Assembly (NCBI GenBank): GCA_051530055.1
Contig: CM121342.1
Location: 13,965,480-14,029,479 of the forward strand
Source of the DNA: Neoechinorhynchus agilis
Taxonomy: Eukaryota > Animalia > Acanthocephala
Reading direction: 5' to 3'
Length of the DNA stretch: 64,000 nt
The notes beneath the pieces were generated by a model. That model was not told the origin of the DNA. It saw nothing but the letters and a program-made list of their open reading frames with translations, and made no database searches. The translations under genes and the position numbers were made by a program. This document shows, in pieces, positions 8,510 through 63,950 of the stretch; the stretch's first letter is position 1; each line of letters begins with the position of its first letter.

Positions 8510-8600
8510 ATTAGAAGTGTGTTTTATAGAAGCGTCAACCGGTAAAAAAATCGATTATAAACGTTCTGCGAACATCGTCGAGATCATCATCAGTTTGTTT
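8510..8600 (-). repeat. Penelope pLTR-like arm with a degenerate hammerhead motif, inverted relative to the adjacent array
   Basis: Reverse complement reads aaacaaaCTGATGAtgatctcgacgatgttcGCAGAACGTttataatcg..., homologous to 25453-25664 and 63396-63475. Confidence 0.7.
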
Positions 8601-8603
8601 CCG

Positions 8604-10785
8604 AACTGTTTATGAAAACACTTTTCGTGGTTCGCAGAATGTCTTTAATCTAAAATATTATTTACTGGGTGAAGACTTCTAAACACAATAATTCGCTAGT
8701 TATATAATCCCTTCCCTCCCGCGGTACCTCCTCACATATCGACATTTTTAAAAATGCGAGCCATTTAACTGATTGAATTTGTTTTTCCATGCTTTTAGAA
8801 TAAAATTCTTTTTACTGTTCAAAAGAAGAAAACATACAAACAACCTCGTAGAAAGGCACACGATTGTGCTTCCGAAATATCAGATACAATAGGTATATTC
8901 CTTATATTTTCCGCCATAAAAATTTATTGGTCGTTATATCAAAAAATGCAGAAAAGTGAGGAGGTACCGAGGACTATATAATTAGAGAATTATTGTTTAG
9001 AAGTCTTTAACCCGGTTAACAAACTGTTTATGAAAACACTTTTCGTGGTTCGCAGAACGTCTTTAATCTAAAATATTATTTACTGGGTGAAGACTTCTAA
9101 ACACAATAATTCGCTAGTTATATAATCCCTTCCCTCCCGCGGTACCTCCTCACATATCGACATTTTGAAAAATGAGAGCCATTTAACTGATTGAATTTGT
9201 TTTTCCATGCTTTTAGAATAAAATTCTTTTTACTGTTCAAAAGAAGAAAACATACAAACAACCTCGTAGAAAGGCACACGATTGTGCTTCCGAAATATCA
9301 GATACAATAGGTATATTCCTTATATTTTCCGCCATAAAAATTTATTGGTCGTTATATCAAAAAATGCAGAAAAGTGAGGAGGTACCGAGGACTATATAAT
9401 TAGAGAATTATTGTTTAGAAGTCTTTAACCCGGTTAACAAACTGTTTATGAAAACACTTTTCGTGGTTCGCAGAACGTCTTTAATCTAAAATATTATTTA
9501 CTGGGTGAAGACTTCTAAACACAATAATTCTCTAGTTATATAATCCCTTCCCTCCCGCGGTACCTCCTCACATATCGACATTTTGAAAAATGAGAGCCAT
9601 TTAACTGATTGAATTTGTTTTTCCATGCTTTTAGAATAAAATTCTTTTTACTGTTCAAAAGAAGAAAACATACAAACAACCTCGTAGAAAGGCACACGAT
9701 TGTGCTTCCGAAATATCAGATACAATAGGTATATTCCTTATATTTTCCGCCATAAAAATTTATTGGTCGTTATATCAAAAAATGCAGAAAAGTGAGGAGG
9801 TACCGAGGACTATATAATTAGAGAATTATTGTTTAGAAGTCTTTAACCCGGTTAACAAACTGTTTATGAAAACACTTTTCGTGGTTCGCAGAACGTCTTT
9901 AATCTAAAATATTATTTACTGGGTGAAGACTTCTAAACACAATAATTCGCTAGTTATATAATCCCTTCCCTCCCGCGGTACCTCCTCACATATCGACATT
10001 TTGAAAAATGAGAGCCATTTAACTGATTGAATTTGTTTTTCCATGCTTTTAGAATAAAATTCTTTTTACTGTTCAAAAGAAGAAAACATACAAACAACCT
10101 CGTAGAAAGGCACACGATTGTGCTTCCGAAATATCAGATACAATAGGTATATTCCTTATATTTTCCGCCATAAAAATTTATTGGTCGTTATATCAAAAAA
10201 TGCAGAAAAGTGAGGAGGTACCGAGGACTATATAATTAGAGAATTATTGTTTAGAAGTCTTTAACCCGGTTAACAAACTGTTTATGAAAACACTTTTCGT
10301 GGTTCGCAGAACGTCTTTAATCTAAAATATTATTTACTGGGTGAAGACTTCTAAACACAATAATTCTCTAGTTATATAATCCCTTCCCTCCCGCGGTACC
10401 TCCTCACATATCGACATTTTGAAAAATGAGAGCCATTTAACTGATTGAATTTGTTTTTCCATGCTTTTAGAATAAAATTCTTTTTACTGTTCAAAAGAAG
10501 AAAACATACAAACAACCTCGTAGAAAGGCACACGATTGTGCTTCCGAAATATCAGATACAATAGGTATATTCCTTATATTTTCCGCCATAAAAATTTATT
10601 GGTCGTTATATCAAAAAATGCAGAAAAGTGAGGAGGTACCGAGGATTATATAATTAGAGAATTATTGTTTAGAAGTCTTTAACCCGGTTAACAAACTGTT
10701 TATGAAAACACTTTTCGTGGTTCGCAGAACGTCTTTAATCTAAAATATTATTTACTGGGTGAAGACTTCTAAACACAATAATTCT
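8604..10785 (+). repeat. Tandem array of about 5.2 copies of a 418-bp unit, each with an internal imperfect inverted repeat
   Basis: The anchor cccggttaac recurs at 9011, 9429, 9847, 10265 and 10683 (418-bp period), and units differ at only a few sites. In unit 1, 8664-8735 and 8956-9016 are imperfect inverted repeats. Confidence 0.97.
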
Positions 10786-10788
10786 AAT

Positions 10789-11155
10789 TTTTCGCTCAGC
10801 GAAAAAAACGTCACTGTATTATTCTTTTCGTTCAACGTCGTGTCGTACCGAAATATTGGAATCAATAAATTCTTTCAATTTTCACGACAAATGCGAACAA
10901 ATATTGTTCATATTTTGTAATGGTACAATAAATTATCTATTGAATCCGATATTTCGGAAGCACAATCGTGTGCGCAGGGCATAAAACATAAGCTACCTTC
11001 TAGAAAGACACACGATTGAGCTTCCGCAATATCGGATTCAATAGATAATTTATTGTACCATTACAATATATGAATTTCTTTGTCGAAAACTAAAGATTTA
11101 AAGAATCGATGTTTTTGTGACGTTTCTCACCCGGGTGAGAAACGTCACAAAAACA
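10789..11155. mobile_element. Non-autonomous fold-back element (MITE- or Helentron-associated-like) with terminal hairpins
   Basis: Central inverted repeat 10915-10972 / 11009-11066. Left end ttttcgct-c-agcgaaaa followed by aaacgtcac. Right end is a perfect 46-bp palindrome at 11110-11155 containing gtgacgttt. Confidence 0.6.
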
Positions 11156-11649
11156 ATCATGCTATCCACCCAAGGCAACAACTTGACTTTATTTAAAGAA
11201 TCAATTTCCAAAAGAACTGGGTAATTTCGGCGATTGAACCTTTATGAAAACAAGATCAATACAATGAAATAATGTAGCGAACCCACAAATACCCATCTAT
11301 ACTCAGAATACTCACTAGAAACACTTCATCGAACAATTCCACGCTTAAACGAAATTCTGGATGAGAGCCAAGGAAACTCGAGAAGTTTCTTGTTCTTTCG
11401 AGTTTTGACCTACTGACGACGTTGAGACTTTCATAAGAGGCACCGAGGATCTGCCGCTCCGTTTGCCTCGTCATTGTTGTGGTTTGGGCAGCCGAAAAGA
11501 CTTTACCGGGTTTTTTTGTGTTGAAAAAGCTCCGTGACAGTCATCTGACAATCATTTTGTTCGGTCAAGATAAAAAATGTTTTAGAGATTTAAATTTTTT
11601 TTGTTTTTTTAATGAGACAAAGTTTATATTAAAAAGGCGCTACAAATTT

Positions 11650-12640
11650 AATTTAATTATGACGTACCGGCGTTGCCAGTATACTGGCAGCGTTCCCTCG
11701 CTGTATCGCAATTCGTTGAGCGAGGAAATTTCTAGAGCGCGGTTCCCCCGTCATTCTTTTCGTCCCAATTCGTCGAGGAAAGTGAGCGCTGACGGTCCCA
11801 AGGCTCCATGCGTTTCCACGGCAAAAGGGACGAAATGGTAATTCCTTTGGAGCTCTCTATATTTTGAACGCTTTCGTTCCTCAACTACGACCGCTGAACC
11901 TCCAGGGCTCTTTTTAGAAAACTGAAAATTACTGGGGGCAAGCGTGTCCACGCAAGTCGCTTCCCATAAAAGAGGTTTCCCCTCCCGCCATGGAAAAACC
12001 GTGAAACCGCCAGGTCGCTTGCGGTCTAGGCGGCACAAGTTACTTGGCTCTAAAATATTGGGCACGTGAACGGAATCTAGGGCTCTACTCAAAATTGAGT
12101 TCAACTCTGCGTGTCTTGGAAACCACCCTCTGGACATTATACAACAGAGGCCGTGTCTGCCATTGGCTTCAACTATAGATCCGCAGCGACAGCGTTGCAG
12201 GATACAAATATCCTGGCCCAATCTTAAAGAAACTGCGGTTCATCATCATCAGTTTGCTAGTTTGAGCGTCTTTTAATAACTAACAAACTGATCAGTTGAT
12301 GGATTGTCGACTGATTTCTCAACCGCATGTTATTCTTCTCGGTATTCCTTATTTGCTCGCTCGATTAGATGCGACGAACGCTGGAAGGGCTAAATTAGAC
12401 ACTGCGCGGATGCCGAGGCCGCTAAAAGAGGTTGGGAACGTAGCCTGCCGCCAGCCCGTATCCGTAATGTTAATATTTAAAATTTTCTTTAAAAAAGAAC
12501 GTAAAACTCCGTCAAGATCCGATAAAACTCTTTTCTCCCCGAAACACGGAGCAGTTCTCAACTTATACATCAATTTGGGATAGAAGGCTTCGTGCGCCGA
12601 CAGCTCACATGCTCTTGTACATAATAATTCGAGCTACGGT
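11650..12640 (-). mobile_element. 5'-truncated CRE-clade retrotransposon (RT C-terminus, CCHC zinc knuckle, RLE endonuclease)
   Basis: PKLMYKLRT...WRQATFP..GLGIR..LALPAFVAS, then CRCG..GRHGLCC..RH, KRPGG..PW, E.RKRSKY, FVPFAVETHGALG and a frameshifted QRGNA end. Confidence 0.88.
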
Positions 12641-13215
12641 ATGTGGGCCTCGAGGTCGCGAAATCCTTTTTCCACGTTAGACGATCATCGCAGATTTTCG
12701 GCAAGTTGCTCCCGGGGGGGGCTCGAGGTTACAAAATACGAATTTTATCTCTTCGGATTTAAAATTGCAATTTGAACAAAATTAAAATCTTTTTTTCTTA
12801 CGAATCACATTTTTTCGGCATGAACAATTCGATTTTATATCGTGCGGGGAAAAGATACTTTCTTTTTCTTTGTAGTTTTGTCATCACTCGGATTCTAAAA
12901 TTCACTGATCTATGTTTCCGCGATATTTCACCACACGGATAATTGTGACATTTTCCCAAGGTTAATCATTGCTAGGCAGCATTGCTTGCTCAAATATTTG
13001 AAAACTTACAAGCAATTGACTGAAGAAAGCCAACGAAAAAGCCGAAAATTTTCAAGATAAATCTATTTTCTGAATCAAAAATCGCTAATCGAAACCGAAA
13101 CTATAATGAATAATTTATTTACATTGGGAAAATATCGGAATTATTCCAAAAGGTGAAATATCGTGGAAATAAATTAGTGAATTTTTGAAGCCGAGGGGTT
13201 TTATAAGTACTTGTT

Positions 13216-13436
13216 TTATATGGCGTAAAGAAATTAAATGATGATTTTGGTTTTGAAATCCGATTGGTTTCGGAAGTACAATCTTGAACGCCTTTATCAG
13301 GATTTTTTTGCAAGTGTTTATCTAACGTCGTAAACATTTCTAAACAACCTTGATCAAAAGGCGTTCAAGATTGTGCTTCCGAAACCAATCGGATTTTAAA
13401 ACCAAAGTCATCATTTAATTTGTCTACGTCATATAA
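13216..13436. mobile_element. Fold-back/MITE-like element with about 85-bp arms
   Basis: aaattaaatgatgattttggttttgaaatccgattggtttcggaagtacaatcttgaacgccttt is mirrored by aaaggcgttcaagattgtgcttccgaaaccaatcggattttaaaaccaaagtcatcatttaattt. Confidence 0.75.
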
Positions 13437-13817
13437 AATAATCAATATGAGCAATTCAATCTTCAAGTTGTATAACTACCAAAAGAAAATTCTAAATCAT
13501 ATCGCTTAGAATTTCTAATGATGAAAACTCACACTTAATGCTCGACCAGCGACCTTTAGACCGAAAAAGACAATAAAAGTGTTATGTGTGTTGATCCGAT
13601 GTTTTTTGACATGGGGTGATTGATCATTTGAATTCAATGTTTCAACGGTCAATTATACATATTCGTTATTTTTGAGGCTCTTAATATCGATTCCCGTTAT
13701 GAAATTGCCAATTGTATTACTTAGTTTTTGAATTAAGCTCAACTTTTCCTTACAAAAGCACATATCGTAATGACTTTTACGCCAATTGTTTTTGCTAAAT
13801 ATTAGAGGTCAATTCAG

Positions 13818-16800
13818 ATGGAAGAGGAACGCAAAGTCGATTTTAATGAATCATCCGCCGATGATTCGGACTCAGAAGATGTGGAATTCGATACGCGTCC
13901 ACTTTTAAGCGATTCGATCTATGAGAAACTCAATCAAATTCATCCAGATATCTTGAAGAACTATGATATTCTTAAAGACGACTTCGGGCATACTGAACTC
14001 ACTGAAGAGGATGAAAATATCTTGAAAGTTGTAGATCTGGATAGATCGGATTTCAATGTTGTAGATGCGGTCAATCGTTTGTTTCCTGATCCGGAATCTT
14101 TACAAAATATTGACACAATCTTGTCTACCTTGAAAATTGAACTCCTTTCTCTCAACACTCAAACCGATCAGCTATTGTCTGAGTTTTACAAGACTGACTG
14201 TACGTCGTTAACTGAAGCTTTATCAGCATCACATAATTCAATGAATCGCCTTGTTGAAACGTGTGAAACTGTAAGCTCGCAGATCCGTGAAACTGCAAAC
14301 AGTGCAGAATCAGTTACTGCTGACATTAGAAAACTCGATGCAGGGAAGCGTCAATTATCGGAAACACTTGCTCATCTGAATCAATTTGAACAGTTTATTG
14401 AGGGAATCGAGGATATAAAAAAAGGTCTTACTCAAGGTGATCTTCAAAAGGTTGCTTCTACATTATCGAAAACTAATTTTGTTGTCGATACCCTCCGATC
14501 ATTCTCATATTTAAATAGTATAAAAGAAAAGCTGGACGAATATGATGAATTGCTCAACAAAATCCGACAAACTGCCAGAGATGCATTTGAACGGGTATTT
14601 ATTCACAGAACGAAATATGGAATCATATCGGCGAATTGCGGCGACGAAAAGGACGCTGTTTGCAATTTGCTGGATGCAATTGGCGAGGAAACTCAACATG
14701 AAATGACTGATAGATTGATAAATCACATCCTAAAGGAGTATGTAGCACTCTTTGATAAGTCTCAAGAATGCGCTTGGATCGATAAGGTCGAACGACGCTA
14801 TATTTGGCTAAAAAGATCGATAGTGGAACTTAATGAGCGGTGGTATGGAAGTAAAAAGGGTATTCAGCACTTCCCAGAAACGTTTGTGGCTACTGACAAT
14901 TCAATGGAAGTTATTTTTATGCTATTTTTATATCGAGCGTTTATTGAAGTCCAAAGGTAGCAATAAGCAACAGGTTTTTATTTTTTTAAATAGTCCATTA
15001 TTGTTTTGTACTTAATCCATACGGTTTTAAGAACAAGAAACTCTCCCATGTTCAGGATTCGAGTTGTTTTTGATCGTTCTTTTAACTCTTTCTCTACTTT
15101 ATGTGTTTAACAGTTTCCGGGAACAATTTCGTTTCAGATATCAACTTGTGGCTCGTTATTGAGTGCCTTTTATCTTTATCGGTAGTAGTTATCATAAGTA
15201 ATTGCTAAATCATTTGTGCTCAGACGTGATCTCAAAGTGGTTTACATTGAAACTGAAATTGTGAACTTCACTTTGCTCGTTTGACAATCTAACGAACAAT
15301 CAATTTAAGATCAACCGTTGTACATTTAATATTCTGGTATTTGCGGTCGGCATTCTTCGCTATGCGCGATATCTTTAAAGAGAATATAGGAAGATGAAAT
15401 CGAGTGCCGAGGTTGAATTTTTACATGATTTTGTACTCCGATTTCAAATAACAAACTATAATTCAGTAGCCGCAGAGTTTAACTGGCATTTGGCTGAACG
15501 TTTGACGGACAGATTTTGTTGTACAACTGCGAATGAACTTTGCGAGATTATGAAGGAGCGAAGATCTGAGATAAACGTTAAACTTTTAAGACTATTGATT
15601 GAGCGAACAACTGCATTTGAAACTGCCCTGGACAAAACATTCCGCGGTGAATCCCAAGGATTTGTGTTCAGAAATGCGATATCAGGAAAGCTCAGTCAAT
15701 TTTTTGACATTTACGTTCAGTCGATCGATGAAGGCCTCAATGAGCTAATTGACAAATTCTCAAGTGAACTAAGATCGATAACATTCTCTCCTTCGCCTTT
15801 CTACGAATCAGATGAACTCCAAACAGACGACGAGGGGCAATCGACGTCGATATCAGTGATCCCGAGTGCTGCCGATCTATTCATTTTCTATCGGAATTGC
15901 ATTCAGCAAACTGCAAAGTTGGTAAGAATAAACAAAGAAAGTGAATCCAAAAATGGTGATATTCGACTAATGCTAGTGTCAGTTTTTGATAAATATTTGA
16001 ATGATTACCGCAATCGGGTTTTGATTCAAGCTGGAATTGGTGACCTTCTGAAAACGGATAGCACGGCTTCCCGATTCGGCGCGATAAGTGAATCTTTGAA
16101 TGTGTGGAAATGTTAAATGGAACATAGACACTTGTTAAAATTTCCATTCCAAACAATCAACATTTTCTAAAGTATCCGATGACCAGAAAGATTCCGGAAG
16201 TCCGAGTTCAATTATAAAAATTTGTCGCGTTTTGTCAACTTGTGAATACTGCATCGAAATGATCGATCAACTGAAGTTGAAAATTGAGCAGGTTTTTCTC
16301 ATTGGAGACGTCAAGGAGAAATCTTTCGATTATGCAAAACAAGAATTCAATTCCTTGATTGACAAATGCGTCCACAAACTTGCTAATGTTGTTTATCAAG
16401 CTGCATGCGGACAATGGGTTGTGGCTATGAAGAAGATTCATTGGCAAGCTATCGAAAATGTTGGAGACCGAACCACTCATATTGATAATCTCGTTTCACG
16501 GTTACATAACTTTAACGAATGGGTTCTCGAGGCGATTTTGTATTTTATTTGATGTATTAATTGAGCGCGGTTAAGTATTTCGAAATGATATATTCGCAAA
16601 TTGAACTTTTCATCATACATTTGCCTTCCTATTCTTGCTGAATCTCAATTGTCCTGTGGCTATAATCCCCTATTTAGTTATCAACTAAATGCATTGTTCA
16701 ATTCATTTAGCGTTTTAAAAAATCTGACTTCGTGCTTTGTCCCTACTCCTTATATTTCTCCCTTTGCTTACTGTTTAGAGAAAATCAATTTTACTTTTGG

Positions 16801-17402
16801 CAGAATCTAATTCGCCTCCTCCATTAGGAATATCCATGCACCTTGAAAATGTTGAGATTATGTGATGCACTAGACCACCTTTCGCCCTTTTCCTTTTAAT
16901 CGAAGAGAATCCGCCGGATATTCCTTTACTCAGAAGTGAGCTTGACTCCGCTCGCCGTTACTTTACCCAAATCTGTTTGGATCTAACAACCGCCACGCTT
17001 ACGACCTTTACTCAGACAATCGCTACAAATTGCCGCCCGTTGACTCCAGCTGCAGCCGAACAATTGTTGCTGGACGCTCACCATCTAAAAGGTGTTCTTA
17101 TGAACCTGCCGAATTTAGAATCCAATGTTCAACGAAAGTGCCCGATAGAGTTGACGAAATACGTCGAGGAGGAAATGAGCCAGTTGGAAATGACTCTGAA
17201 GATGGTAATGAGCGTTCATGAACCGGCGGATGCGTTTGTTGAGACTTTCCTGTGTCTCATGTCGAAGCGGAATCGATCGAGTTCGTTGTTACAAAGGATC
17301 CTTGACATGAAGGGTGTAAAAAAGACGGAAGCTCAACAAGTGTTAGAGTTGTTCAAAGCGCGAGAAAAGGGTTTCGATTCAGAGAATACATTTGCAGACT
17401 AA
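13818..17402 (+). CDS. VPS53: GARP/EARP complex subunit Vps53, multi-exon (ORF blocks 13818-14960, 15394-16116, 16232-16552, 16977-17402)
   Basis: DFNVVDAVNRLFPDPESLQNID, DIRKLDAGKRQLSETL, CAWIDKVERRYIWLKR, LIERTTAFE, MSTCEYC, WQAIENVGD and AAEQLLLDAHHLK...QRILDMKG match Vps53. Confidence 0.92.
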
Positions 17403-25270: not shown

Positions 25271-25452
25271 TTAAGTCTTCATGTTAGCACCCATACCAGA
25301 AAGAGAACGTTATAATTTGATAATAACTTTAAGCTAAAGAATCGAAGTTTAACAATTTAAGGAATTAGTTTTTAATAGCTTAAGCTAATCGTTTGTAGTG
25401 TCCATTTGAGATATTACAAAACCTGTAAATGAACCGGAATACTAACGAATTT

Positions 25453-25703
25453 GGAATTATTATTTAGAAGTCTACGCCCGCGGTAAATGATTATTTCGAT
25501 TAAAGACGTTTCGAACCTCGTCGAGTTCATCGTCAGTTTGTTTGTTAGTATCGATAGAGTCTATTACTAACAAACAAACTGATGATGAACCCGACGAGAT
25601 TCTCAGAGCGTTTTTAATCGAAATAATCATTTACCGCGGGTGTAGACGTCTAAACAATAATTCCAATCACATTCCTCCCGGTACCTCAAATATCGACATT
25701 TTT
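25453..25703. mobile_element. Head-to-head pair of Penelope pLTR-like arms forming a 212-bp imperfect palindrome (25453-25664)
   Basis: Arms of about 95-100 bp are reverse complements around a short spacer. The right arm continues into ttcctcccggtacctc..atatcgacattttt, which is shared with the 418-bp unit. Confidence 0.85.
25500..25545 (-). ncRNA. Minimal type I hammerhead ribozyme motif with intact core
   Basis: Minus strand reads aaa CUGACGA u GAAC ucgacgag GUUC GAAA C GUC uuu. Core nucleotides, the G10.1-C11.1 pair and a GUC triplet are present. Helix III is the loopless palindrome ACGU. Helix I is only about 3 A-U pairs. Activity untested. Confidence 0.65.
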
Positions 25704-26164
25704 AAATAACGAATTCTGCATCATGAGTATTGTGAGCAATTTAACTGTTACTTCGTCTCACATGTAAGCTCGCTTCTTTAAAGTGAACAAGAAATAAGTT
25801 ATTTTCTTTAAAACAGAGTAGTTTCACATTGTGGATTTTTTTAATATCGCCTGAAGTACGTCTCATCGAGTTCCAAAGCGATCATTTACGACATCTACAC
25901 AAACGAAACAGTTTTATCGAATTCTTGAAGGCAAAGCTTTATTTTTTTAATTTAATGACAATAATGCATCTAAGCGAACGCCTTCGAAAAATGTTAATAA
26001 ATCAATTTTATTTAAAACCCGTGTTAATCTTCATCGAATGACTGGGCATCTTTATCTAATGAATTCAGTTCAATTGCATCTTTAATAACTTTTATAGCTT
26101 CCTCATAGTACAGCTTTCTTGCAAAAATTTTAAACCTCCTTTTAAAATTTCAGCAGCGCTGCAT

Positions 26165-39390: not shown

Positions 39391-39600
39391 ACTCGTAGGA
39401 AATGTAAGCGCAGTTATATGCGCTTTCGTATTGGCAAAATAAATTTTTGCTCATTGCAGTCTGGGTTTTGTAGCAGCGTACTCTGAAGTTCAAACATCTT
39501 GGCTTCAAAAAACAAGTCTTACATTAGTTTAAATATAAAATGAGATTGTAAAAGCAACATCCAAATCAAACAAAAAATATGATAGTTTGAAAAAGTAATT

Positions 39601-39800
39601 AGAACTATTACTTAGGTCTTCACACGGTTAAGAATCTTTTAGTAGAGATGTTTCGAACCTCGCTGGATTCATCATCAGTTCTTAAAGACGAGAGGAATGC
39701 GTTTCACCTCTCGTTTTTTTGGAACCGATTATGAACTCGACAAGGTTCAAAGTCTTCGTTAAAAAATTATTTACAGAGTCAAAACCCAAATAATAATTCT
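39601..39800. mobile_element. Second head-to-head pLTR-like pair with hammerhead-like motifs
   Basis: Left arm (minus strand) reads CTGATGAtGAATccagcgagGTTCGAAACATC. Right arm is degenerate (ccgattatgaactcgacaaggttcaaagtc...aataataattc). The spacer holds its own hairpin acgagagg...cctctcgt. Confidence 0.7.
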
Positions 39801-41561
39801 TGAAAAAGTAAACCCAAGCTAATTTAAATGCATATTTTTGTTACATTGCGACGTCGAAAGCTGATTGGTTCATGCCAAGTAATTAGCCGGTATGATTCGT
39901 CTACGTTGACGGACTTATCATGCTTGTTTTGCGACACTTTCTGTGCTTTAAACGTGCAAACAAACGTTCATTCTGCTTGGAACATTTTTTACAAATACAA
40001 AATCCATTTAAACTATAAAACAACAGCAAAAAAGTGTTATTTTCTTCATAAAACCTTTGCCAACTTTTTATTTATAAATTCAAATGAGAAAAAAGCAACT
40101 AGAGCAAATTACTTAACACAATCTTCGTTTATCTCAGTTATAGAATTATGAAAAAATCTTTAGACTTTAATGCTGCCAATAACTTCACAACAAGCATCAA
40201 CATTGGAATGAATGATAGTCACGATTTCAATTTCTCTTCCAAAGATGAACTAAACGTATACTTGTGCTTCACAGTTTGCTTCTATAGATTCCTATATACA
40301 TTAAAGTGGCAACTGATTTCCATTGCTTACAATATGTTAAGATATTACTTCTAGCAAAAAAATATCAAAGTAATTTTTTTACCGTTTTTACTTTTTATTT
40401 GCAGATAGCCTTGCCTGATCAAATTTTCGTTAACATCCTGTGCTTAGCCCGTATAACACTTTCCACTTTTATAAACCTTGAATTTTTCACATTGCAACTA
40501 ACAAATCATTAGAAAAATTTGGAGTTGAAATTATATGTGCGAATTTGCCGAGTTCCTGTTTCGTATAGATTAATGGTCTCCAAATTGAAACGAAATGGTT
40601 TGATACCGTAGAACACTCAACACACATCACTGGATATCCTACTGATGCAAATTTTACAATTTTGAAGGTATTTTTGAGTATGAAAATTTTAGCGCATAGA
40701 CAAATCCAGTGTAATTTTAACTAAAAATACTGGCATGAGGATGATTGTCAGATTTCAGTGTTGCGCTGCAAGATTTTTTGCATGTACCAGTAATATGACG
40801 GCATTGAAAGCTGATAGTTTTCATTGGTCCGATGGCGCAAATCAAAAATCCTGATAATAGAACCAAGCTTTTTCTGTACGATCGTTTTCCTACTTTATTT
40901 AGGCCTAATTTAAGTCCGATTTTTTTAAAATGAGCAAAAAAGGACTACAAACATTCAAAATAACAGATCGCAGTTTTAATTATCTCCTTGTAGTTTCTTA
41001 TTTTTACCCTTAATGTTTCCATTTTAATGTAAGTGAATACCGACAAAAAATTGTCGAAAAACAAAAGGTATATGGTGTGCATTCGCTGTTCTCTCACTTT
41101 CTTCATGCATATATTCACTCGTTTACTTTAAAGAAATAACGGAATTAAATATGTTTAGAGTTTTATTGTGGCATTTGGTTATTTGCGTCCACGAACTGGA
41201 ACTAAAATGCTTTGACTTGTGATCAGTTTTACAGGTACAATGTTGTGCTTGTTTCTCTTTAGTGTCAGACCGCTCATCGGGCGCAATCAACACAATGAAT
41301 TAATATCTATTAATCATGCGATATTAATCAATCATTTTAAAATTGTACAGAACAAATAAAGGCAACATTTGTCAGTCAAAATGGATATTAGAAAAGTCGT
41401 AAGACTTAAGTCATATTATTAACAGTTCTTCGCACGTCTTTAAGAAAGATCCGATTCTTTAGAAAAATTCCGTATCTAAAGCACTTACAAAACTCTTCTT
41501 TTCTTATCAAAAACGGATGGATTTCCACGTACACACAAAGTAGAAAAGTATCACATCCAGA

Positions 41562-44199: not shown

Positions 44200-44305
44200 G
44201 TGTTTTTAAGTGTGTGACTTTTTTCATGGCTGATAATTTTTCCTTGGGCAGTATTTCTTGGGCAAAATTATCAGCCATGAAAAAGGCCACACACTTAAAA
44301 AACAC
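44200..44305. mobile_element. Small MITE-like fold-back, family shared with 53879-53978 and 60063-60165
   Basis: tttttaagtgtgtgacttttttcatggctgataatttt is mirrored by aaaattatcagccatgaaaaaggccacacacttaaaaa. Confidence 0.72.
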
Positions 44306-50283: not shown

Positions 50284-53200
50284 TCAGCTGGTGAATTCAA
50301 TTATTATGCAAGCAGCCAAGTAGCACACATAAATGGCAATCAATGAGAATCCCAGTGGTTTTGAAAAGTGGAATCGACATAAAGGAAGCACGATGAGGGT
50401 AAGCGCGATAATTCCAACTAGGCTGTAAGTCACGACTATTTGAAGGAGTGATGTTTGTATGTACAATGGAATTGGGTACATTTGAACAGCCAAATAAGTC
50501 AACGGGATTCCCATTCCGAGTAGAATATCTAAAAGTTTTGTTCTAAGATGTGCTTAGTGTTTAAGTGGTTCTTACTTAGAAGTGGCCCCGCGTAGCATGC
50601 TGAAATCGCCATGTTAGGCATTCCATTCCGTGCCATTACCACGTCTGATACTGAATCTGTGATGTTTAAAGAATTTTTGTCTATATATTAATCAAATATG
50701 GTTTTTCTAGATTTAGTTCAGCTTTATCGACAAATACTAAACAGCTGAAAAATCGATTTCATCACTTTTCGATACTAAATCACCAACATCGAATCATGAA
50801 GACAGAAAAATTAAATTGAGATTTTGATTTTAAAAACGAAAGCCATTGTTTGTCGATGAACTATAACGGTCTTGAGTCCAAAAAACACAACAAATCTTTG
50901 AAAAATATATCAATATATGGGCTTTAATCAGCTCCGTTCCAATTCGCAAAGTTTAAGAAACTTTCCATGCTATTAAGAATTAAAAATTTAAGCTAGTTAA
51001 TGCCTTGATCTATGTAGTTTTTAAAACGATAACTGAAAGTGTCACACAATCCCTAGTAAAATGCTTGTTAATTCGAATTTCTTGGTCTAAACGCAACATT
51101 TTGAAAAAACTCTTTTCGATCATTTCAATCAATTAATAAATTAAAATTGGAACATCAAATCAAAAACTTATGGCACTGACATACCTGCCATGCTGTTTCC
51201 GAATGCAAGAAGAGTCATTCCCATCAATACTTGACTGATATTCAATATTATTCCAATCGCCTATTGATTTCCTGTAATTACCGCATCTTGCAAAAACTTC
51301 AGCCTTACATTTAACAGATTGACGACATTCTCTGCAATCACATATATCCAAATCATTGACATCGGAAAGGAAATTAACGCAAACACCTAAATAGCAAAGA
51401 TTATCAACATACCAATGGCAACCTTTCGAATTTTGAAGATTTAAATATATCATATATCATTGTCATCGAGATAAATTTGATTGTACGTTGGCGAATCCTG
51501 TCCCCGGTGTTATCGATACTCATGATTAGATTAATTTACAATAGCGACTGAAGAGGCAAGGAAAACCTTGTGAAATATTTCTCAAATAAATGAGTATCGA
51601 TAACATCGGGGCAGGATTCGCCAACGTACAATTTAAAGATATGGTATAAAATCATTCTAAACGATACGTCCTTAAAAACGAAGAGTAGCAATTTTTCGGT
51701 TGCATTCGGTTAAGACTGCAGCACGTAGGATTTTTCAGAAAAAGTATTAAAATTGGACTTACTTTAAAACCCAAAGTTTGAGTCCAATAATTAGGATTAA
51801 TTTTAAAACAGAGCTTTAAATACCATTGATGATATTAACGAGAGTCTATTAAAGTGTTTGCAATGAAATTTGCCTATAAGGATCCAAAGGATTTTATCGG
51901 TTACACCTATACATACCCAGATAAATCTTGGTTCTTCATTATAGAATGTACTTGCAAAGACGATGAGAAAAAACGCAAATCCAATTGGTAATACTATCGC
52001 ACCCAGTGGTACTTTTGCGCTTCCAACTTTGTACATCAAGGTTCCGGTAAGCAAAAGACCAGTTAGAGGAGACAACAAGCAGTGTAAGCTGTTAAGAACC
52101 CGATTCCAATTGTGATTTTCAACATCGTTCATAATTTGTGGACACGACAGGCGAAATAGCATCACGGGAATATACTAAAAATAAAATGAATGTTGTCGTC
52201 GTTCGATTTAGTACCCAAAATAGTTACTTTTCCCGAACCCAAATTTGAATTGACGATTGGAAATTTTTTAGTTCAAACTATCGAAATCGGTTAATATTAT
52301 TAACACTAGTTGTTAGACATCCTTTAAAGCAACTGTGAAACTGTTTCGTATGAATCGAAATAGAATATTTTACGAAATGCCCTAAATTAATTGAACTGCA
52401 AAAATAAAAACCTTCGGAACAATAGACTGAAGAAGGCCTACACGAAGGTCGAAAACGATCAAACAAATCAATTATTATAATTCGCTATAAAAAAGTAAAT
52501 GATGAACATCTTTACAAAAATAGATATGCTAACTCCACTTATATTCTTCTTTTTTAATAAGACACTTCTTCCACTTTAGGGTAAGTTATAGTGAAGAAAA
52601 TAGATAATTTAGGTAAGCCATAATAGACTGGATGTGATGTTTTTAAGAACACAAAGAAATAGTCATTTTTGGTCCGGGAAAAGTGAAATATAAAATTATT
52701 TGAATAGAATACCTTTATGATTGCCAATATCAGGCGCAGAGTGGTAGGTTCTCCGTCGTAAAGGGAGATCATTGCAATGATTTTCGAGCACGGAACAAGA
52801 GATAGCATCTTTCTGATAACCATTGCTTTATTCTATGAATACAAGTCTCAAAGTTTTGGTGAGTATATGGCGCGGATTGATCGCTCGAAGTCAGTGATGC
52901 TGATAATGCATCTAAGTCATCCGGAGATCTCCAATTATCCATATCTTCACTATGTATGTCGTCGGCTGGTTCTGCAGTTCCGATACGTTCATCAGGTTCT
53001 CCCACAGAAGAGGATTCGTCTATTAAAAGGTACTGTGCTTCATTCAAAGTTGATGTATTGCTTCTTGACCTGGGCCATAGATCAGCTCTTCTCCAACTTC
53101 GAATGCCATTAACGAGTGCTTTTACTATCTTGGTCGAAATCACAAACAAAACGTACGAGCCATAGACAACCAATAGGGCTTTTTACGAGCAAAAAGTAGT

Positions 53201-54559
53201 TCTTTAAATGCTTCCTTATTTTGTTTTAGTGCACTAACCTATGGCATCTTGTAACCTAATTTGCTGCCGGTAGATAATTGTTGAGATTAAGAAAGATGCG
53301 AGGAGCAAGAAAGTAATGTCTCTTAAAAGCGGTCGTTCGATTGATTTAAACGGGTTTGTCACTGATACTAAGCCAACTACTCCTGTGCATATGAATATTG
53401 CCGCTCCTGTTTTAGCAGTTTTTAGCAAATAAATTCACGGAATATGCTCACCTAATAAAGCTCCGAAAGCTAGTCCAGTCGATTCACCCAGCATAGCTGA
53501 TGGATCACGAGAAGACGACTTTTGCTTGCTGGAAAAAACTGCTAATGATGCTGATATGATATCTGGAGCTCCGTTGCCAAGAGCAAGTAAAGTTACACCC
53601 TAAAAATATTTTTTGATTTAACTTGATAGACAATAAAAAAATCAGAATAATGGCATTTCCAATAAGCGATAAGAGTCGCATTTACAATGAAGTGTTTCAA
53701 TGTAAAAGTTAAGAATCGTTTCAGGCTTACTAACTCCATAAATTAAAATTATATACAAAAGGAAGAAGTCTCAAACTTCTTTTGCGGCGCTTTAGTGTTA
53801 GAAACAACCTCTTAAGCAGTAGCGCTGAAGCACTCAAAAAAGCTGTTTTAATCTGACTTGCCGGTTACATTAATATTGTGTGTTGAAGTGATGTCTTTTC
53901 CATGGCTGATAATCTTTCCTTTAGACTGTGTGTCAAAGGAAAAAATATCAGTCGTGGAAAAGGCCTCACCTCAACACAGAACTCGAAGAAATATTTTCTC
54001 AGATTATGGTCGCCAAATTTATGAGGCATTAGTCGAAACATAAAGGAAATGACCATTAATAAGTGCAACTTTTTGACCGGAAACATTCAATAAAAAGAAT
54101 TTTGAAATGATTCAATGCGGCTAGGGTTCCATACTGACCGCAACGTTTTCACTAAGCCGCAACAACTCGGATATGTAGTGAAGTGATGGACAGAAGCTGA
54201 AAACGAGATGGATGGATGAATTTTAGCACACGTTGAACCTACAATTCATCGGCACAGATTCCAACACAAATGAAAAGTATGATAAGACAAATACCCTAAA
54301 CGATAGAATGAAGTTTTTTAACGGAAATGTTTTTTTTGTTGCTTACCAATGGTAGAAGGCTAAGAGGAACTAGTCTTTGAGAAAAGTTGCAATACACAAA
54401 TGCAAGGATATTGGCATATCCGCCTTGATGGCAGGTTGGTTCGTTTTTAGTGAAATCGCAGATCGCGCTGTAGTTTGCGATTGAATGAAGGTCACGACAA
54501 ATGAAAGATCGGCTGTCCGAATGTCTGTAGTGATTATAATCGATTGCAGATTGGTTCAT
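50284..54559 (-). CDS. SLC8B1: Na/Ca exchanger of the NCLX/NCKX6 (CCX) type, many exons
   Basis: CHQGGY.NIL..VYC, alpha-1 repeat GVTLLALGNGAPD, RDITFLLLA, WNRVLNSLHCLLSP, alpha-2 repeat GMTLLAFGNSMA, GMANMAISACYAGPLL and a terminal TM ending IIEFTS. Confidence 0.88.
51480..51632. mobile_element. MITE-like element with about 44-bp near-perfect terminal inverted repeats, in an SLC8B1 intron
   Basis: attgtacgttggcgaatcctgtccccggtgttatcgatactcat is mirrored by atgagtatcgataacatcggggcaggattcgccaacgtacaat. Confidence 0.78.
53879..53978. mobile_element. MITE-like fold-back (same family as 44200-44305)
   Basis: tgtgttgaagtgatgtcttttccatggctgataatctttcctttagac is mirrored by gtcaaaggaaaaaatatcagtcgtggaaaaggcctcacctcaacaca. 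Confidence 0.7.
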
Positions 54560-55462: not shown

Positions 55463-55532
55463 TACATCGATTTTTTCAGACCTTATTGGTTGCTATGGAC
55501 ACTTTAGTGGGGAATTGAGTAAATGATATAAA

Positions 55533-56020: not shown

Positions 56021-57571
56021 CCCATTTTACTTCAGTTTGGCATTTGCCAAAGATGTTGCAGTAAATGGGACCAGCGATTCGCTGATTAATAATTGCTGTA
56101 GAATGCAAAAACGGATATCATCTTTGGGGTGCAAAATCAAATTTTGCATTATAAGTTTTTATCGCTTTTTGAGAACAGACCTTTTAAAACGCGTTGGCCA
56201 AAGAAGCGGATGATGATCGGAAATTTTCTGCTTCCATTTGGTCGACGACTAAAATTCTAAGCAGGCATAAGATTTTCCCCATAGATGTAAAGATTACAAG
56301 TGTTATTTAGATCCTCACCCGGTAAATTAGAAGTTAATAGGCGTTGAATAGACCGAGAAAAATCTAGGTAAAACTATGGTTTATTATGCACACTAAAATA
56401 TTTTCATACCTCCAAACGCATCGTTTTATCCCCAAAAACCCAACCATTCCGAAATCTAAAATCAGAGCCAAGAGAACGTCTTTTCAAAAGTCGTGTTGTC
56501 GCTTTGACTCATTTTTACGAAACATGTAAACCCCCTCAGCGACGTTTACGAGATTTAAGTTCGCATTTTAGCTCTCTTAATTTTTGTCAATTTGGTATTT
56601 GCTCGTTTTTTTTGTCAAGTGCAAAACAATTCGAAGTCAATTTAGTGGCAAAAATTAAGAAAATCATTGCTTTGTAGCTTTTCGTGAAAAAGCAACAACT
56701 CATTTATGTAAAAAGTCATGTAGACGTTTACGGTGCTCGTGAAAGTTTACTTAATTTATGGCAAACGGCAATTATTCTTAGCGATAATGATTTTCTTGAT
56801 CTCGATAAACTCTACGTAACTAACAAAAAAGTGTTTTTTATTTAAAAAAGGATATCAGGACTACGCTTTGTATTCATCTGATACTCAAAGCGAGCTAGAA
56901 ATCATTGGGAAATGTTATGCGATTGGTGGTCAGAGCTTCGAAGACGCAATTAAAGGAGAAGATTTGAATTGATGACGACGGGAGGCAATTATTTAGTTGT
57001 TTCCCATCCTTCTATCGACAAAAGATAAAAAAAAATATTATTTTTACAACAATGACCTTGCTTCTCTATGTGCCATGTGAAAAGAAAGCTGTTACTAACT
57101 TGCAGAGATTTAATTGTTTTTCGTTCTTTAGAATGCAATTTGTTAATATTTACAAAGTGAAATTTTGAGCGATTCTCTTTTTACTCGAGTTCGCTTAAAC
57201 TTTCTCTCAAAAAAGGGTGTCAAACTGCATTCTGGCTTAAATTTCAATCCGTTTTGGGATAAGTTGAAATTATCAAAACTTAAAAAAAAAAGAATCTGAT
57301 ATGAACACCAAATAAAGGTGGCTATGAGCCAAACCGTGATTTTCAGAAGCACACGTGCGCACCTCGATACACGCCGGTATTTATGGCTCCATTGCTGTAT
57401 TGAATCGAGCCGTAGAGCAACAAAATGTGCCTCAATTCTCTTTATCGAGAGTACTTCACCTATTTCCCTACTCCCGACATTACAAATACGTTCATTGTAG
57501 ACGTCTAAGACAATTGCACGTGCACTATAACCGGATTTTCTATTTGAGAACTCTATGCTGTTCATTGAGAC

Positions 57572-58676: not shown

Positions 58677-58991
58677 CTACTGGTCGTGATCGGGAAACTT
58701 CGTCGAAGCGACCTTTAAAAAAATCGTAAGCTTAACATTTGAAATCGGATCACATTTTCCAATATTATTCGAATAAAGTATTTCGCTGTCTGGCACACAG
58801 TGGATTTTCCACTGAACATAATAGGAAGGAATTTTTGATTTATTTTTTTGATCGAGTATACTCTTTTGATGGGTTCTATTGTTCCCCGGTACGTTGTGTG
58901 GCAGCTCGTTCATCGCTGACCCTTTCACGAATGTTAAAACGCTCATGAGTAACAGTAGATTTGTTTTGTTATTTTGGTCGCTTGTCAACAT
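58677..58991 (-). CDS. Possible exon of a secreted hypothetical protein
   Basis: Signal-peptide-like NLLLLMSVLTFVKGSA and two Cys. Continuation unresolved. Confidence 0.25.
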   Translation of the reverse strand: MLTSDQNNKTNLLLLMSVLTFVKGSAMNELPHNVPGNNRTHQKSILDQKNKSKIPSYYVQWKIHCVPDSEILYSNNIGKCDPISNVKLTIFLKVASTKFPDHDQ

Positions 58992-60062
58992 TCGAGGGGG
59001 ATTATTGAAGAATAATGTATATTTCGACTGATTGTATCAGTCATTATCAATTCAATTGTTAGTAACATTCTTATGCGTGGCTATGCCGGTAATTTTTTGA
59101 TCGATATGTATAAGATTATTCTTTTTCACACCGAAATCGATAAATTGTGTATCCATTCAGAAATGTATGGTGAAAAAGAATAATCTTTTACATATCAATC
59201 AATTGTCAGTAAGTTTTACACAATGTGTGCACTCAGCTGGGTAAAACTTACTAACAATTGAATTGATAATCACTGATACAGTCAGTCGAAATATACATTC
59301 GTCTTTAATAATCTTCTCGGGCATCGGCAAGCGAACAAAATAACAATGCATCCATTTAACTCCGATTCCATTAGTTGCCATAAGTGTAATTGCTCCACTC
59401 CCTGTAGTTTCATGGAAATCACGATTTTCGTTGGCAAAGTTGATTTGGATAACACTGTGGAGCGTGCATGATTTTCGAACAAATCTGTCAAGACGCTCAA
59501 CTTTTAATCACTGATTCATTTCGATATTTGGTCCTAAGATCGTCTATCTTTGGTTGAGATCACGGAACTGTGCCAATGGTAATAAACGTCGGAATGATGA
59601 TTGTAGTGAGCGCTTTTTGTAGGCATCCTTCTAACTCGTCCGCCAAACATCGGGATGATCTAAAAAAAAGAAACAGCATCCAGGAAACATTTTATGCCCA
59701 ACTCTTTAAAACTGCGTAACGCTTAAAAGGCAACGACGTTGGATAGAAATCTAAAGGGCGGCGAATAAAGTCTTTGAGCGTTTTATAAGCACTTACCCTC
59801 CACATTAGGCGAATCTGGATAAACCCTGGGAAGTTTTCGATGACAAAGTTATTGATATAAAAAAGACAGCGTTGTCCAGTCCGTAAGCTAAACGGTGTTT
59901 ACAAGGAAGTTGTGCGACTCGTTGAGACGTTAAGATAATCGATCAAAGATGATTGCCTTGAAGTCCTTGCGTGCACGTCCACTAATTGGTGAATGATTTT
60001 CTACGGCTCTTATAGACAAAAGTTAATTTTTTGTAGTTTAGCTAACCGGTAACTTTTATTTT

Positions 60063-60165
60063 GTGTTTTTAAGTGTAGCCTTTTCCATGGCTGATAATTT
60101 TTCCTTTGGCACACAGCTTAGAAAAACAGTCCGAATAAAAGGCACACTTAATTCTTTAAAAACAC
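60063..60165. mobile_element. Third, partly eroded copy of the 44200-type MITE family
   Basis: Left arm gtgtttttaagtgtagccttttccatggctgataatttttcctttggc. Right arm degenerate (aaaaggcacacttaa...aaaaacac). Confidence 0.6.
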
Positions 60166-61649: not shown

Positions 61650-62182
61650 AAGATGTTTTCAAGACATGTCAAAGTTTGGGATATACAATCACCGAACGAT
61701 TGTAGAAAATCGATGACCAATATGCTGTAAAATAAACAAGAGATCTTAGGGTTCTCAACGTTTGATGCAAGACGTCAAAACAGAGCTCAAAACGTCCGTT
61801 CTTGAATTAATAAAGAAAATTAAGCGATACCTTACGAAACTGTAACTTCGATATAGAACAAAAAAGTAATCATAAACTGAGTTTTTCACTCAACGGCAAT
61901 CGTCCTCGTCTGATATCATCAGACAATAGATCCATCAAAAATATTGTCTTTAGGAGAAAAGACAATTTAAAGTAAAATTATGCAAACCTGTTTAAACCCT
62001 CAATGAAACGTTTTATTTGGTAAAATACAAGCTACCGAAACATGCATCTCAGGCATCTAGTGAAAATTGTAACTTGTAAACTTTAGGCGGATTGTTCCAT
62101 CTTTGCCGCTCATAAACGTTAAGTTGTAAGATTGATGTTGTTTTCTGTTCTTTCCTGCGAATCAATTCACATTTGGAGGATT

Positions 62183-63365
62183 TAGCGGTGGAGAACCAAG
62201 AGCGAAGAAACGGCGGACTGTAAGGCGGAAAATGTTGGGACGGCACGAGTGTTGTAAGTGTGAGTAAAATGAGAAATGTGTGGTAGAAATGGAGGAGGGA
62301 GAGAATGAAGAAGCTCTGAGTACTTTTGGAATATTAGAGCGAGGTGTTTTCCTAAAGGCATGAGTTTGAGAAGCAGATTAGAGCACATCGCTTGTGAAAG
62401 ATGTTAGATTTTTGGAATAGATAAGAAGAAAAATTGCAAAAGATTGGGTATGTGCAGGTGAGCGTTATAATAATAACACGTTTATTTGTTAATTAACAAA
62501 GAATAGGATCCATGTACCTTTGCGTCCTCATAAACACTCGAGTTCTGATTTGTTCAATGAATGCGTTTGTTGATTTTGGAGTGGATTACGAGTTCGATGG
62601 GGTGGGAATATCCGGTCGGGGAATGTCCGTTCGGATGGGGATTGGCGATTATTGTTTGCATGATAGCTTGTGAGGTTGGTCTTTCCTCAGGTTCATTTAG
62701 TGCTATGATATTTGAGAATATGGAAAAAGGAGCGGAGATGGAGGGAGGTGCGAGGTTGAGGGAGGATGAAATAAATTGGGATTACGGGTGTTGTGCTGAT
62801 GTGAAAATGGGAATAAATTATGGTAAAAATTGTGGTGGTAGGGCAGAGAGCTGTTTAAAAATTTTGAGGTATTCAGTGAGAGGGGAAATCATCTGTGCAA
62901 ATTTAGAATATCCTCTATGAAAAGTTTCAAGGCGACGGGTTTGTGATTTGGACATGTTGCAAAAGGTGGAATAGCCGTAAAACGAAGGGATTCTTAAATG
63001 GATAGGCGCTTGAGGAAATTCCAATTAAGATTTGATTGAAACTGAAAACATAAAATTCTGAGGAAGGTGACTCGTAGGATGTCATTCGGAAGCTCGGGAT
63101 AGGATATTGGAATGCGGGAGATTGAGGGGATCACTTCGAAGCATTTAGAGAAGTTCAGGTAGAGTTTGTGGTTGATGCAGAGATCTTCGATGCGTGTGAT
63201 TTTGTTAGAAGTTAAAACGAAGAAGGGTGTGACGGTGATTGCGTGGCGAGGATGAGATCGTCGGCACATAAGAAAAGTTTAGAGTGAGACCAGAAGGATT
63301 TAAGTTCGTATAAGAAAATATTAAAAAGAAGTGGTGAAGGGGACGGGTGTCTTTGGTGATGGTGT
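62183..63365 (-). mobile_element. 5'-truncated L2-like LINE (about 62466-63365) plus a second tandem 3' coding fragment (about 62183-62460)
   Basis: SPLLFNIF..LFLCADDLI, LNFSKCFE and LNW. The 3' UTR and tail are homologous to 4050-4331. The second piece has the HTYNTR motif. Confidence 0.85.
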
Positions 63366-63395
63366 TCGAGAAGGTAACCCGGCAATGAGTTTATC

Positions 63396-63720
63396 GGAAT
63401 TATTGTTTAGGTCTACACCCGGTGAATGAATATTTATTAAAGACGCTTCGAACATCGTCGGATTCATCATCAGTTCTAAAATATAAGTGTTTAAGTAATT
63501 ATTACGCTCTCACACGTATTTATGGCCCATAGTGTTGTTTCATTTCGGTTAGCTATGAAGACAGAGTTTGTAGCTTCGTTGGTCATTCATGTCCGGTTTC
63601 TGTTCTTTAATTAAGAAGGCTCGAAAGTTATTGCGTTCACTTGCTATAACCAATGTTTGCTCGTAATTGACCACTGGCCAGTTTGTATATTGTGTAGTGC
63701 AATATTCGACGCTATTACCG
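63396..63720 (-). mobile_element. Penelope-like element 3' end: GIY-YIG C-terminus (stop at 63549-63551), hammerhead-like motif (63442-63473), AATAAA and pLTR tail
   Basis: NWPVVNYEQTLVIASERNNFRAFLIKEQKPDMNDQRSYKLCLHS* resembles the end of PLE GIY-YIG domains (..IL..E..R..E..LIK..KP.LN). About 75 nt downstream lies CTGATGAtGAATccgacgatGTTCGAAGCGTCtttAATAAA. Confidence 0.75.
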
Positions 63721-63732
63721 GGTTGCGCGGCA

Positions 63733-63950
63733 AGTTTTGACTTCGATGGAAAGTATTATGTGTTCAAAATAGCCAAGGGTTCACCTATTGCCCCAGCTTT
63801 CGCTAATCGTTTCATGGGTCACTTGGAAAAAGCGCGCCATGCGTTTAGACCGAAATCGGAAGAGGCCTGGAGGAGCAGTGAGCTCTTTACGGAGTCGAAT
63901 GCTTTCGATAAGTCCAGTACTTTCGAAGTATTTAGGATCTTTGGATGACA
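63733..63950 (+). mobile_element. Penelope-like reverse transcriptase fragment, inverted relative to the GIY-YIG end
   Basis: SFDFDGKYY...AKGSPIAPAFANRFMGHLEK matches the PLE RT motif F.F.G..Y.Q..G.AMGSP.AP..AN.FM..LE. A degenerate LDDI follows in another frame. Confidence 0.8.

Follow-up and report, generated by a model that had tools for sequence, protein, structure and literature searches.

A hammerhead-bearing module in Neoechinorhynchus agilis as the probable 3'-terminal insertion unit of a Penelope/Poseidon-type retrotransposon

Why does a single module of 95–140 nt recur along a 64-kb stretch of the genome of the acanthocephalan Neoechinorhynchus agilis (the window), at some places as head-to-head pairs and at one place within a 418-bp tandem array? 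The original prediction held that the module derives from a Penelope-like element (PLE), that it carries a minimal type-I hammerhead ribozyme, and that it has been redeployed as palindromes and arrays. A Penelope-like origin with a minimal type-I hammerhead was borne out at the level of the consensus sequence. We consider it probable that the module is the 3'-terminal insertion unit of an N. agilis retrotransposon of the Penelope/Poseidon type, with the pairs arising by dual-strand insertion and the array by later DNA amplification. The word "redeployed" is an overstatement: inverted 5'-truncated arms, a one-sided tail and minimal hammerheads that are solitary or on opposite strands represent the default outcome of PLE insertion in the literature (PMC8557442, PMC4209133, PMC11167929).

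Anatomy of the module and its insertions

We searched the window and a further ~95 kb of N. agilis sequence, together about 160 kb of its genome, by BLASTN and by an nhmmer profile built from the module copies. The further acanthocephalan DNA sampled comprised L001, L002, L040 and L041 from N. agilis and L039 from Pomphorhynchus laevis (15 kb). The predicted recurrence at 8.5, 25.5, 39.6 and 63.4 kb and in each unit of the array was recovered by both methods, with E-values of 1e-16 to 1e-25 for matches at 8500-8603(-), in every array unit (+), at 25451-25545(-)/25570-25710(+), at 39599-39690(-)/39716-39804(+) and at 63390-63481(-). This recurrence is far above chance. The head-to-head pairs at 25.5 and 39.6 kb are true inverted repeats, and the identity between arms across the loci ranges from 59 to 88%. 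Two copies that had not been predicted, a tail fragment at 4118-4167 and a partial arm at 56283-56352, were added to the set (Table 1). At 12237-12293, which had also been proposed as a module site, the CTGATGATGA half is indeed there, but the palindrome is short and degenerate, retains just this half and gave no nhmmer match at E<1. Elsewhere on the same chromosome, L041 contains two more head-to-head module pairs, at 4.1 and 17 kb; the module had no match in L001, L002 or L040 of N. agilis or in L039 of P. laevis. We also noticed a perfect 46-bp palindrome, GTTTTTGTGACGTTTCTCACCCGGGTGAGAAACGTCACAAAAAC, at 11110-11155, which includes GAAACGTC and CACCCGGGTG, both similar to pieces of the module.

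The prediction that the head-to-head pairs are insertions of the PLE type held, as inverted arms, target duplications and a one-sided tail are all present. An inverted, 5'-truncated copy abuts a direct copy at 25.5, 39.6, 8.5 and 63.4 kb and at the two L041 loci. The 25.5-kb insertion, whose arms are 86–88% alike, is flanked by a 9-bp target duplication, TAACGAATT, at 25443-25451 and 25707-25715, and the 39.6-kb insertion (nhmmer E=1.6e-22 for the minus arm and 3.1e-17 for the plus arm) by a 12-bp duplication, TTGAAAAAGTAA, at 39587-39598 and 39800-39811; both duplications were read from the sequence, and both lie at AT-rich target sites. No clear target duplication was seen at the array or at the 63.4-kb arm. 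The arms carry an ATG formed by A9-U-G10.1 of the hammerhead, and GAAACGUC translates as Glu-Thr-Ser. They end at one of two 3' termini, either ...AATAATTC, 78–80 nt after the ATG, or a second terminus at 122 nt, which leaves a tail of 42 nt. The tail is one-sided: it is found on the right arm alone at 25.5 kb, on one arm each of the L041 pairs at 4.1 and 17 kb, and on neither arm at 39.6 kb. Taken together, the consensus hammerhead, its overlap with the ATG, the two 3' ends, the one-sided tail and the target duplications identify the module loci as standard, severely 5'-truncated PLE insertion footprints. An inverted copy truncated at its 5' end and a tail on one side are both typical of insertions by PLEs (PMC8557442).

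In the proposed origin, the insertion unit would start with a few bases of 5' leader, pass into the minimal hammerhead that overlaps the start of the open reading frame (ORF) with A9-U-G10.1 as its AUG, and continue through the first ~80 nt of coding sequence to a proximal start site of reverse transcription (...AATAATTC), with the 42-nt tail as an optional extension to a distal site. If the mechanism described for Poseidon_Ac applies, the PLE endonuclease would cut both strands of an AT-rich target, and each 3' end would serve as a primer, with reverse transcription beginning at one or other of the two internal sites. Both cDNAs would then reach the RNA 5' end, 14–20 nt upstream of the hammerhead, and would be joined head-to-head. 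Short palindromes would result, bordered by target duplications and tailed on one arm. The ORF of a full-length PLE at the CUGAUGAUG hammerhead would be expected to begin with MN(S/P)T.FE(T/A)SL. The array probably formed later and at the DNA level, likely by unequal crossing-over or slippage between two direct arms within a cluster of fragments; besides these arms, the cluster would have held an inverted arm along with a piece of an unrelated hairpin repeat, and ribozyme activity would be unnecessary for this step.

Table 1. Coordinates of the module copies and associated features in the window (LINE, long interspersed nuclear element; RT, reverse transcriptase)
Feature	Position	Strand	Description
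Complete PLE-type insertion	25452..25706	both	Minus arm 25453-25545, centre 24 nt, plus arm 25570-25664, tail 42 nt at 25665-25706
Second complete insertion	39599..39799	both	Minus arm 39599-39690, plus arm 39716-39799; short form, tail-less
Sole fully canonical minimal hammerhead in the window	25505..25536	-	CUGACGA-U-GAACUCGACGAGGUUC-GAAAC-GUC; descriptor match with zero core mismatches
Inverted short arm	8511..8603	-	nhmmer E=7.5e-20; head-to-head with first array unit
Tandem array	8604..10784	+	Tandem Repeats Finder: period 418, 5.2 copies, 99% matches
Reference array unit	9022-9439		Plus arm with dead hammerhead 9022-9118; tail 9119-9173; spacer 9174-9354; inverted tail and half arm 9355-9432
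Single short arm	63393..63485	-	nhmmer E=4.1e-25; within LINE copy, head-to-head with probable PLE RT relic
Probable PLE RT motif 4(B) relic	63736..63833	+	FDFDGKYYVFKIAKGSPIAPAFANRFMGHLEKA; tblastn with Poseidon_Ac protein E=0.004, best in window
LINE copy hosting the 63.4-kb insert, 3' part	62468..63337	-	BLASTN to LINE 3306-4331; upstream part 63834-64000
Partial arm, 3' half only	56283..56352	-	nhmmer E=9e-05 and alignment
Tail-only micro-fragment	4118..4167	+	BLAST 91% over 34 nt, z=13; nhmmer E=4.5e-09; within 3' region of plus-strand LINE copy
Degenerate mini-palindrome	12238..12305	both	Read from sequence; each arm is the 5' half of the hammerhead only

State of the hammerhead

Does the module still contain a ribozyme? 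Seven independent arms yield a majority consensus with an intact hammerhead of the minimal type-I form, CUGAUGA-U-GAACUCGACGAGGUUC-GAAAC-GUC. A descriptor with strict minimal-hammerhead rules, written after the traits in PMC4209133, gave a match at 25536-25505(-), against a background of 0.085 matches per shuffled window. The boxes CUGANGA...GAAA...UH, in type-I order and with helix II between them, are found at this position and in the seven-arm consensus; the array units and the right arms at 25.5 and 39.6 kb (25R and 39R) lack them. All copies have an unpaired U between A9 and G10.1, and the G10.1-C11.1 pair is present in eight of eight. Helix III is absent, and the palindromic ACGU is retained in 25L (the left arm at 25.5 kb), in 25R, in the 63.4-kb and 8510 arms and in N4R. 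The left arm at 39.6 kb (39L) and N17L, a copy elsewhere in the genome, have an intact core with ACGU changed to ACAU (in 39L by G16.2 to A). The GAAA box is damaged in 25R, 39R and the 8510 arm, and the core of 39R is destroyed. The relic in the 8511-8603 arm, at 8593-8560, reads CUGAUGA...GCAGAAC, and that in the 63.4-kb arm, at 63473-63442, has A15.1 replaced by G. Of about nine hammerheads, one, that of 25L, is still canonical.

The original prediction had named its own measure of function, namely that the core should be kept better than its flanks. The core columns have a conservation of 0.85 and the remaining columns 0.80, a result that speaks against function. No pair in helices I and II has changed on both sides, and the covariation values were not above those of shuffled sequences. 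By this measure, the copies are not under selection for cleavage. The module copies were dead on arrival and have decayed neutrally since then. In the predicted secondary structures, each strand of the 25.5-kb palindrome forms a single long hairpin (about -145 kcal/mol) and an array unit folds at -115 kcal/mol; the hammerhead region alone, at -9 kcal/mol, is not predicted to fold as a hammerhead. If transcribed, the palindromes would form long double-stranded hairpins rather than hammerheads.

A search of Rfam, whose Hammerhead_1 model the original prediction had named as a check, gave zero hammerhead matches in the window at the gathering score or at E<=10, and just spurious matches of microRNA precursors to a palindrome. 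This negative carries no weight, because Rfam also misses controls with a perfect core, including one at the start of a PLE ORF. The controls came from metagenomes, where a scan for the exact family-specific hammerhead returned zero loci and a looser pattern returned 36 loci from other organisms with the same architecture. A PLE ORF was found at only one of the 36, L005, where the hammerhead lies directly upstream of the N-terminus of a Poseidon-like ORF (tblastn E=1.6e-14), which in another organism ties this motif to PLE coding sequence. When seven of the 36, L005 included, were put to Rfam at E<=10, no hammerhead was called. Separately, a hairpin at 51480-51632 with arms of ~45 bp contains in its loop a minimal-hammerhead-like string, CUGAAGA-G-GCAAGG..CCUUGU-GAAA-UAUU, at 51548-51579. 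With G10.1-U11.1 where G-C belongs, it is possibly a chance match, 0.085 of which are expected per window.

The 63.4-kb locus, the array and competing origins

Is the module physically associated with PLE coding sequence? The copy at 63.4 kb had been described as lying directly behind the end of a Penelope GIY-YIG ORF. Such an ORF end is absent; the flanks are a minus-strand LINE, and a probable plus-strand relic of PLE RT motif 4 is present instead. GIY-YIG was detected neither by Pfam in all minus frames nor by Pfam or PDB searches with a stitched peptide, and a by-eye reading of GIY-YIG on the minus strand was rejected, as its Smith-Waterman score against the Poseidon_Ac endonuclease was no better than those of shuffles. 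The LINE family, with an APE endonuclease and an RT, has two decayed copies in the window: the reference copy at 1-4331(+), which gave Exo_endo_phos at 26.7 bits and RVT_1 at 65.9 bits and has an 18–32 nt tandem motif in its 3' region at 4164-4240, and the minus-strand copy at 62468-63337 and 63834-64000, split by the apparently PLE-derived insert. Within the upstream part of the latter, 63834-63917 encodes LDLSKAFDSVKSSLLLQASSDFGLN, matching the motif A region of the LINE (score 93, z=23).

About 500 bp of foreign DNA separates the two LINE parts, with the minus arm as its low-coordinate end and the RT relic as its high-coordinate end. The local score of the relic, 76, was reached by none of 500 shuffles. 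Large protein databases gave no support, and an exhaustive search of representative sequences returned one spurious match, to a repetitive protein of 3331 aa. We grade the assignment to a PLE RT as probable and not proven, because the relic, in its short and decayed state, does not reach significance database-wide. With an RT relic on the opposite strand, the 63.4-kb arm appears to stand head-to-head with a longer, decayed PLE copy, which is the textbook arrangement. This putative copy was probably truncated at the LINE boundary by a later deletion that would also have taken ~92 bp of the LINE. No module similarity indicating a second arm was found within 63486-63850. L041 holds a clearer PLE RT relic, of motif 5 (RYVDDTF, 16359-16460) and reading FWQRYVDDTFILIDKF...LNFNHSNIQ, 0.5 kb away from one of its module pairs. 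The search of large protein databases with the L041 RT relic returned no candidates. A tandem repeat of ~115 bp occupies 16470-16830, between the RYVDDTF relic and the module pair.

The predicted tandem array was confirmed by Tandem Repeats Finder. Besides its plus arm, each array unit contains a second, inverted and partial module copy, together with a spacer of ~180 bp, in which 9247-9313 (~67 nt) belongs to a dispersed hairpin family. The hammerhead module had been claimed for every unit; the module is there, but the hammerhead boxes are mutated. All units read CUGUUUA...GCAGAAC, with A6, G8, G12 and A13 altered, and the descriptor found no match in the array on either strand. The units differ from one another at 0–5 of 418 positions (>=98.8% identical), and a G/T variant at AATAATTC(G/T)CTAG is G, G, T, G and T in units 1–5 in turn, without strict alternation. 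The near-identity of the units, compared with the 59–88% between arms of the different loci, points to the array as a recent local DNA amplification within an old cluster of PLE fragments, and not as a retrozyme. A ribozyme-driven retrozyme cycle is unsupported, since no array unit has a usable core. The suggestion of a retrozyme-like amplification thus did not survive the broken core, the composite unit and the finding that the units are far younger than the arms.

The alternative that survives best is the model of the original prediction itself, a dedicated non-autonomous element derived from a PLE, similar to a short interspersed nuclear element (SINE) or a retrozyme, whose own short transcript would give rise to fold-backs and to RNA-amplified arrays as sources of circular or hairpin RNAs. 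We regard it as unlikely. The arms from at least five independent events start 5–20 nt upstream of CUGA, which suggests a template with a defined 5' end; such an end, however, is equally explained by the 5' end of the mRNA of an autonomous element. The array is bounded on the left by an inverted arm and on the right exactly by the short-form terminus AATAATTC, as a multimer insertion would be, and its first and last plus arms are 99% alike, so that an RNA-mediated multimer insertion is kept as a minority view. The abutting minus arm (8511-8603) is 67% identical to the array plus arms, which argues that they were not born together recently. Non-LTR (long terminal repeat) retrozymes have been proposed to derive from the pseudo-LTRs (pLTRs) of PLEs (bioRxiv 10.64898/2026.07.22.740005), and in vitro PLE insertion does not need hammerhead cleavage (PMC11167929). 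Against this model stand the dead core in every array unit, the composite nature of the unit, in which an inverted arm and a piece of a different repeat family are combined, and the result that no second copy of the 418-bp unit was found in the window or in the ~95 kb of other N. agilis DNA, which is a small sample.

Several observations weigh against the origin that we prefer, as footprints of ordinary PLE insertion followed by DNA amplification. All arms end within the same short interval upstream of CUGA and paired arms end symmetrically; random 5' truncation would not predict this shared boundary, which could mean a dedicated short template. The end of the array at a canonical 3' terminus also fits a multimer insertion, and the contrast of 99% between its first and last plus arms with 67% for the abutting minus arm implies that a simple two-insertion origin would require later homogenisation. 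The RT relic at 63.4 kb is short, is significant in the targeted comparison only and is not detected by Pfam RVT_1. A full-length PLE with RT and GIY-YIG, carrying the module as its pLTR, was not found within the ~160 kb of genome.

The most economical account of the 5' boundary of the arms might be that the template RNA has its 5' end there. A candidate template would be the element's own mRNA, copied from the 5'-proximal start site on both target strands. A bolder version, to which we give a small chance, is that the palindromes stem from a defined short template starting 14–20 nt upstream of the hammerhead, either a parasite of the PLE or the 5' end of the PLE mRNA, and that multimers of the composite 418-nt unit can be copied with no need for ribozyme cleavage. 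If true, this would provide a mechanism of general reach for the solitary minimal hammerheads that animal genomes contain by the thousand, as well as a hammerhead-independent route to retrozyme-like arrays and hairpin-RNA loci. The shared boundary is the one feature of this locus that could teach something new about PLE templates. In a single case, the inverted arm at L041 4112-4199(-) starts at CTTCAAT, about one base from the predicted hammerhead cleavage site; such a start would be expected of a cDNA made on self-cleaved RNA.

It is highly improbable that the palindromes are miniature inverted-repeat transposable elements (MITEs) or foldback DNA transposons with terminal inverted repeats, in which the hammerhead-like string would be incidental. 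Unrelated hairpin elements are abundant in the window (10907-11074, 13211-13441, 44203-44301 and 58966-59346), and module loci adjoin one hairpin family at three places. The two target duplications are nevertheless unequal, at 9 and 12 bp, a tail on one arm makes the ends asymmetric, and single arms occur at 63.4, 56.3 and 4.1 kb. Furthermore, the layout of hammerhead, ATG and two termini is that of Poseidon_Ac, the motif is expected by chance 0.085 times per window, and probable PLE RT relics adjoin the copies. No more credible is a SINE, or LINE-derived module, mobilised by the neighbouring LINE family, with a tail common to the module and the 3' region of the LINE. In its favour, one module copy lies inside the other LINE copy, and 34 nt of the tail match 4126-4157 of the LINE at 1-4331 with 91% identity. 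We rejected this origin because the second LINE copy lacks the tail match, which in the first looks like a 45-nt insertion ~170 bp from the real 3' end; no other part of the module matches the LINE, and inverted twin arms are not a LINE/SINE signature.

The remaining content of the window is that of animal DNA, with compact genes for cadherin, Vps53, hexokinase, poly(A) polymerase and a WD40 protein. An exact match of the hexokinase ORF puts the window near 14.0 Mb on chromosome CM121342.1 of assembly GCA_051530055.1, and the N. agilis locus L042 overlaps it. The dispersed MITE-like hairpin family has arms of ~66 nt and occurs at 10907-11074, 13211-13441, 9247-9313 (in each array unit) and 36686-36737, as well as at L041 3918-4086 and L001 6625-6692. 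It lies within 150 bp of the module in the array spacer, just to the right of the array and beside the 4.1-kb pair of L041, a closeness more frequent than its density suggests. Unrelated palindromic repeat families are found at 44203-44301, 53861-53981 and 60023-60116, and at 58966-59346; one shares CCATGGCTGATAATTTTTCC, and another is an imperfect palindrome of 380 bp. A second LINE-type RT relic at ~32900-33170(-) reads VDLEKAFDAVPR, LSPYLF and FADDIVL. Two pairs of dispersed repeats, 31327-31813/55533-56021 and 721-869/31077-31225, are 82–83% identical.

Comparison with known systems

How does the N. agilis module compare with systems already described? The phenomenon is known and the host is new, so that the finding is real but ordinary. 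N. agilis joins the hosts of hammerhead-bearing elements of the Penelope/Poseidon type as a member of the Acanthocephala, and for annotation, we recommend masking the palindromes and the array as fragments of PLEs and not listing them as ribozyme genes, microRNA precursors or retrozymes. Like the non-LTR retrozymes of animals (bioRxiv 10.64898/2026.07.22.740005), the array repeats a unit of a few hundred bp from a PLE hammerhead region; unlike them, its units lack a functional core, include an inverted arm and foreign sequence, and are known from a single locus.

In the minimal hammerheads of metazoan PLEs, helix III is missing, helix I is short and helix II long; one extra base sits between A9 and G10.1, G10.1 pairs with C11.1, and positions 15.2-16.2 are palindromic (Cervera and De la Pena 2014, PMC4209133). 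The module shares the box order, the extra base, the G10.1-C11.1 pair, the extended helix II, the short helix I and ACGU in place of helix III. In that survey, most minimal hammerheads are solitary or in opposite-strand pairs 100–700 bp or less apart, with strong variation within one genome, a pattern that the module shares. The paired arms in N. agilis are only 24–40 nt apart, and most copies are core-less. As read for this analysis, the 2014 survey names no acanthocephalan. Within the same phylum, P. laevis has hammerhead-bearing families of Neptune and Penelope/Poseidon, with complex tandem and inverted insertions and tails (Craig et al. 2021, PMC8557442); the module was unmatched in the 15 kb of P. 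laevis sampled.

The closest counterpart is Poseidon_Ac of Anolis carolinensis (Frangieh et al. 2024, PMC11167929). In this element, studied in vitro, stem II of the hammerhead is where the ORF begins, and tandem copies read CUGAGGA-U-G, in which A9-U-G10.1 is the start codon. Reverse transcription starts at two internal sites 111–118 nt into the ORF, the stretch between them is the optional tail of 30–40 bp, and both DNA strands are cut and extended. Three differences are apparent: the cut site lies 23 nt after the ATG in the module and 26 nt after it in Poseidon_Ac, the start sites of the module are at about +79 and +122 instead of +111-118, and the window contains no intact ORF. The module shares with Poseidon_Ac the start codon at A9-U-G10.1, Glu-Thr-Ser at GAAACGUC, and two putative internal start sites ~80–120 nt into the ORF with the tail between them, as well as the apparent use of both target strands, which accounts for the inverted arms. 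It thereby provides, from a distant phylum, a coordinate-level example of the overlap between hammerhead and ORF start, two start sites of reverse transcription, a tail on one arm and dual-strand insertion.

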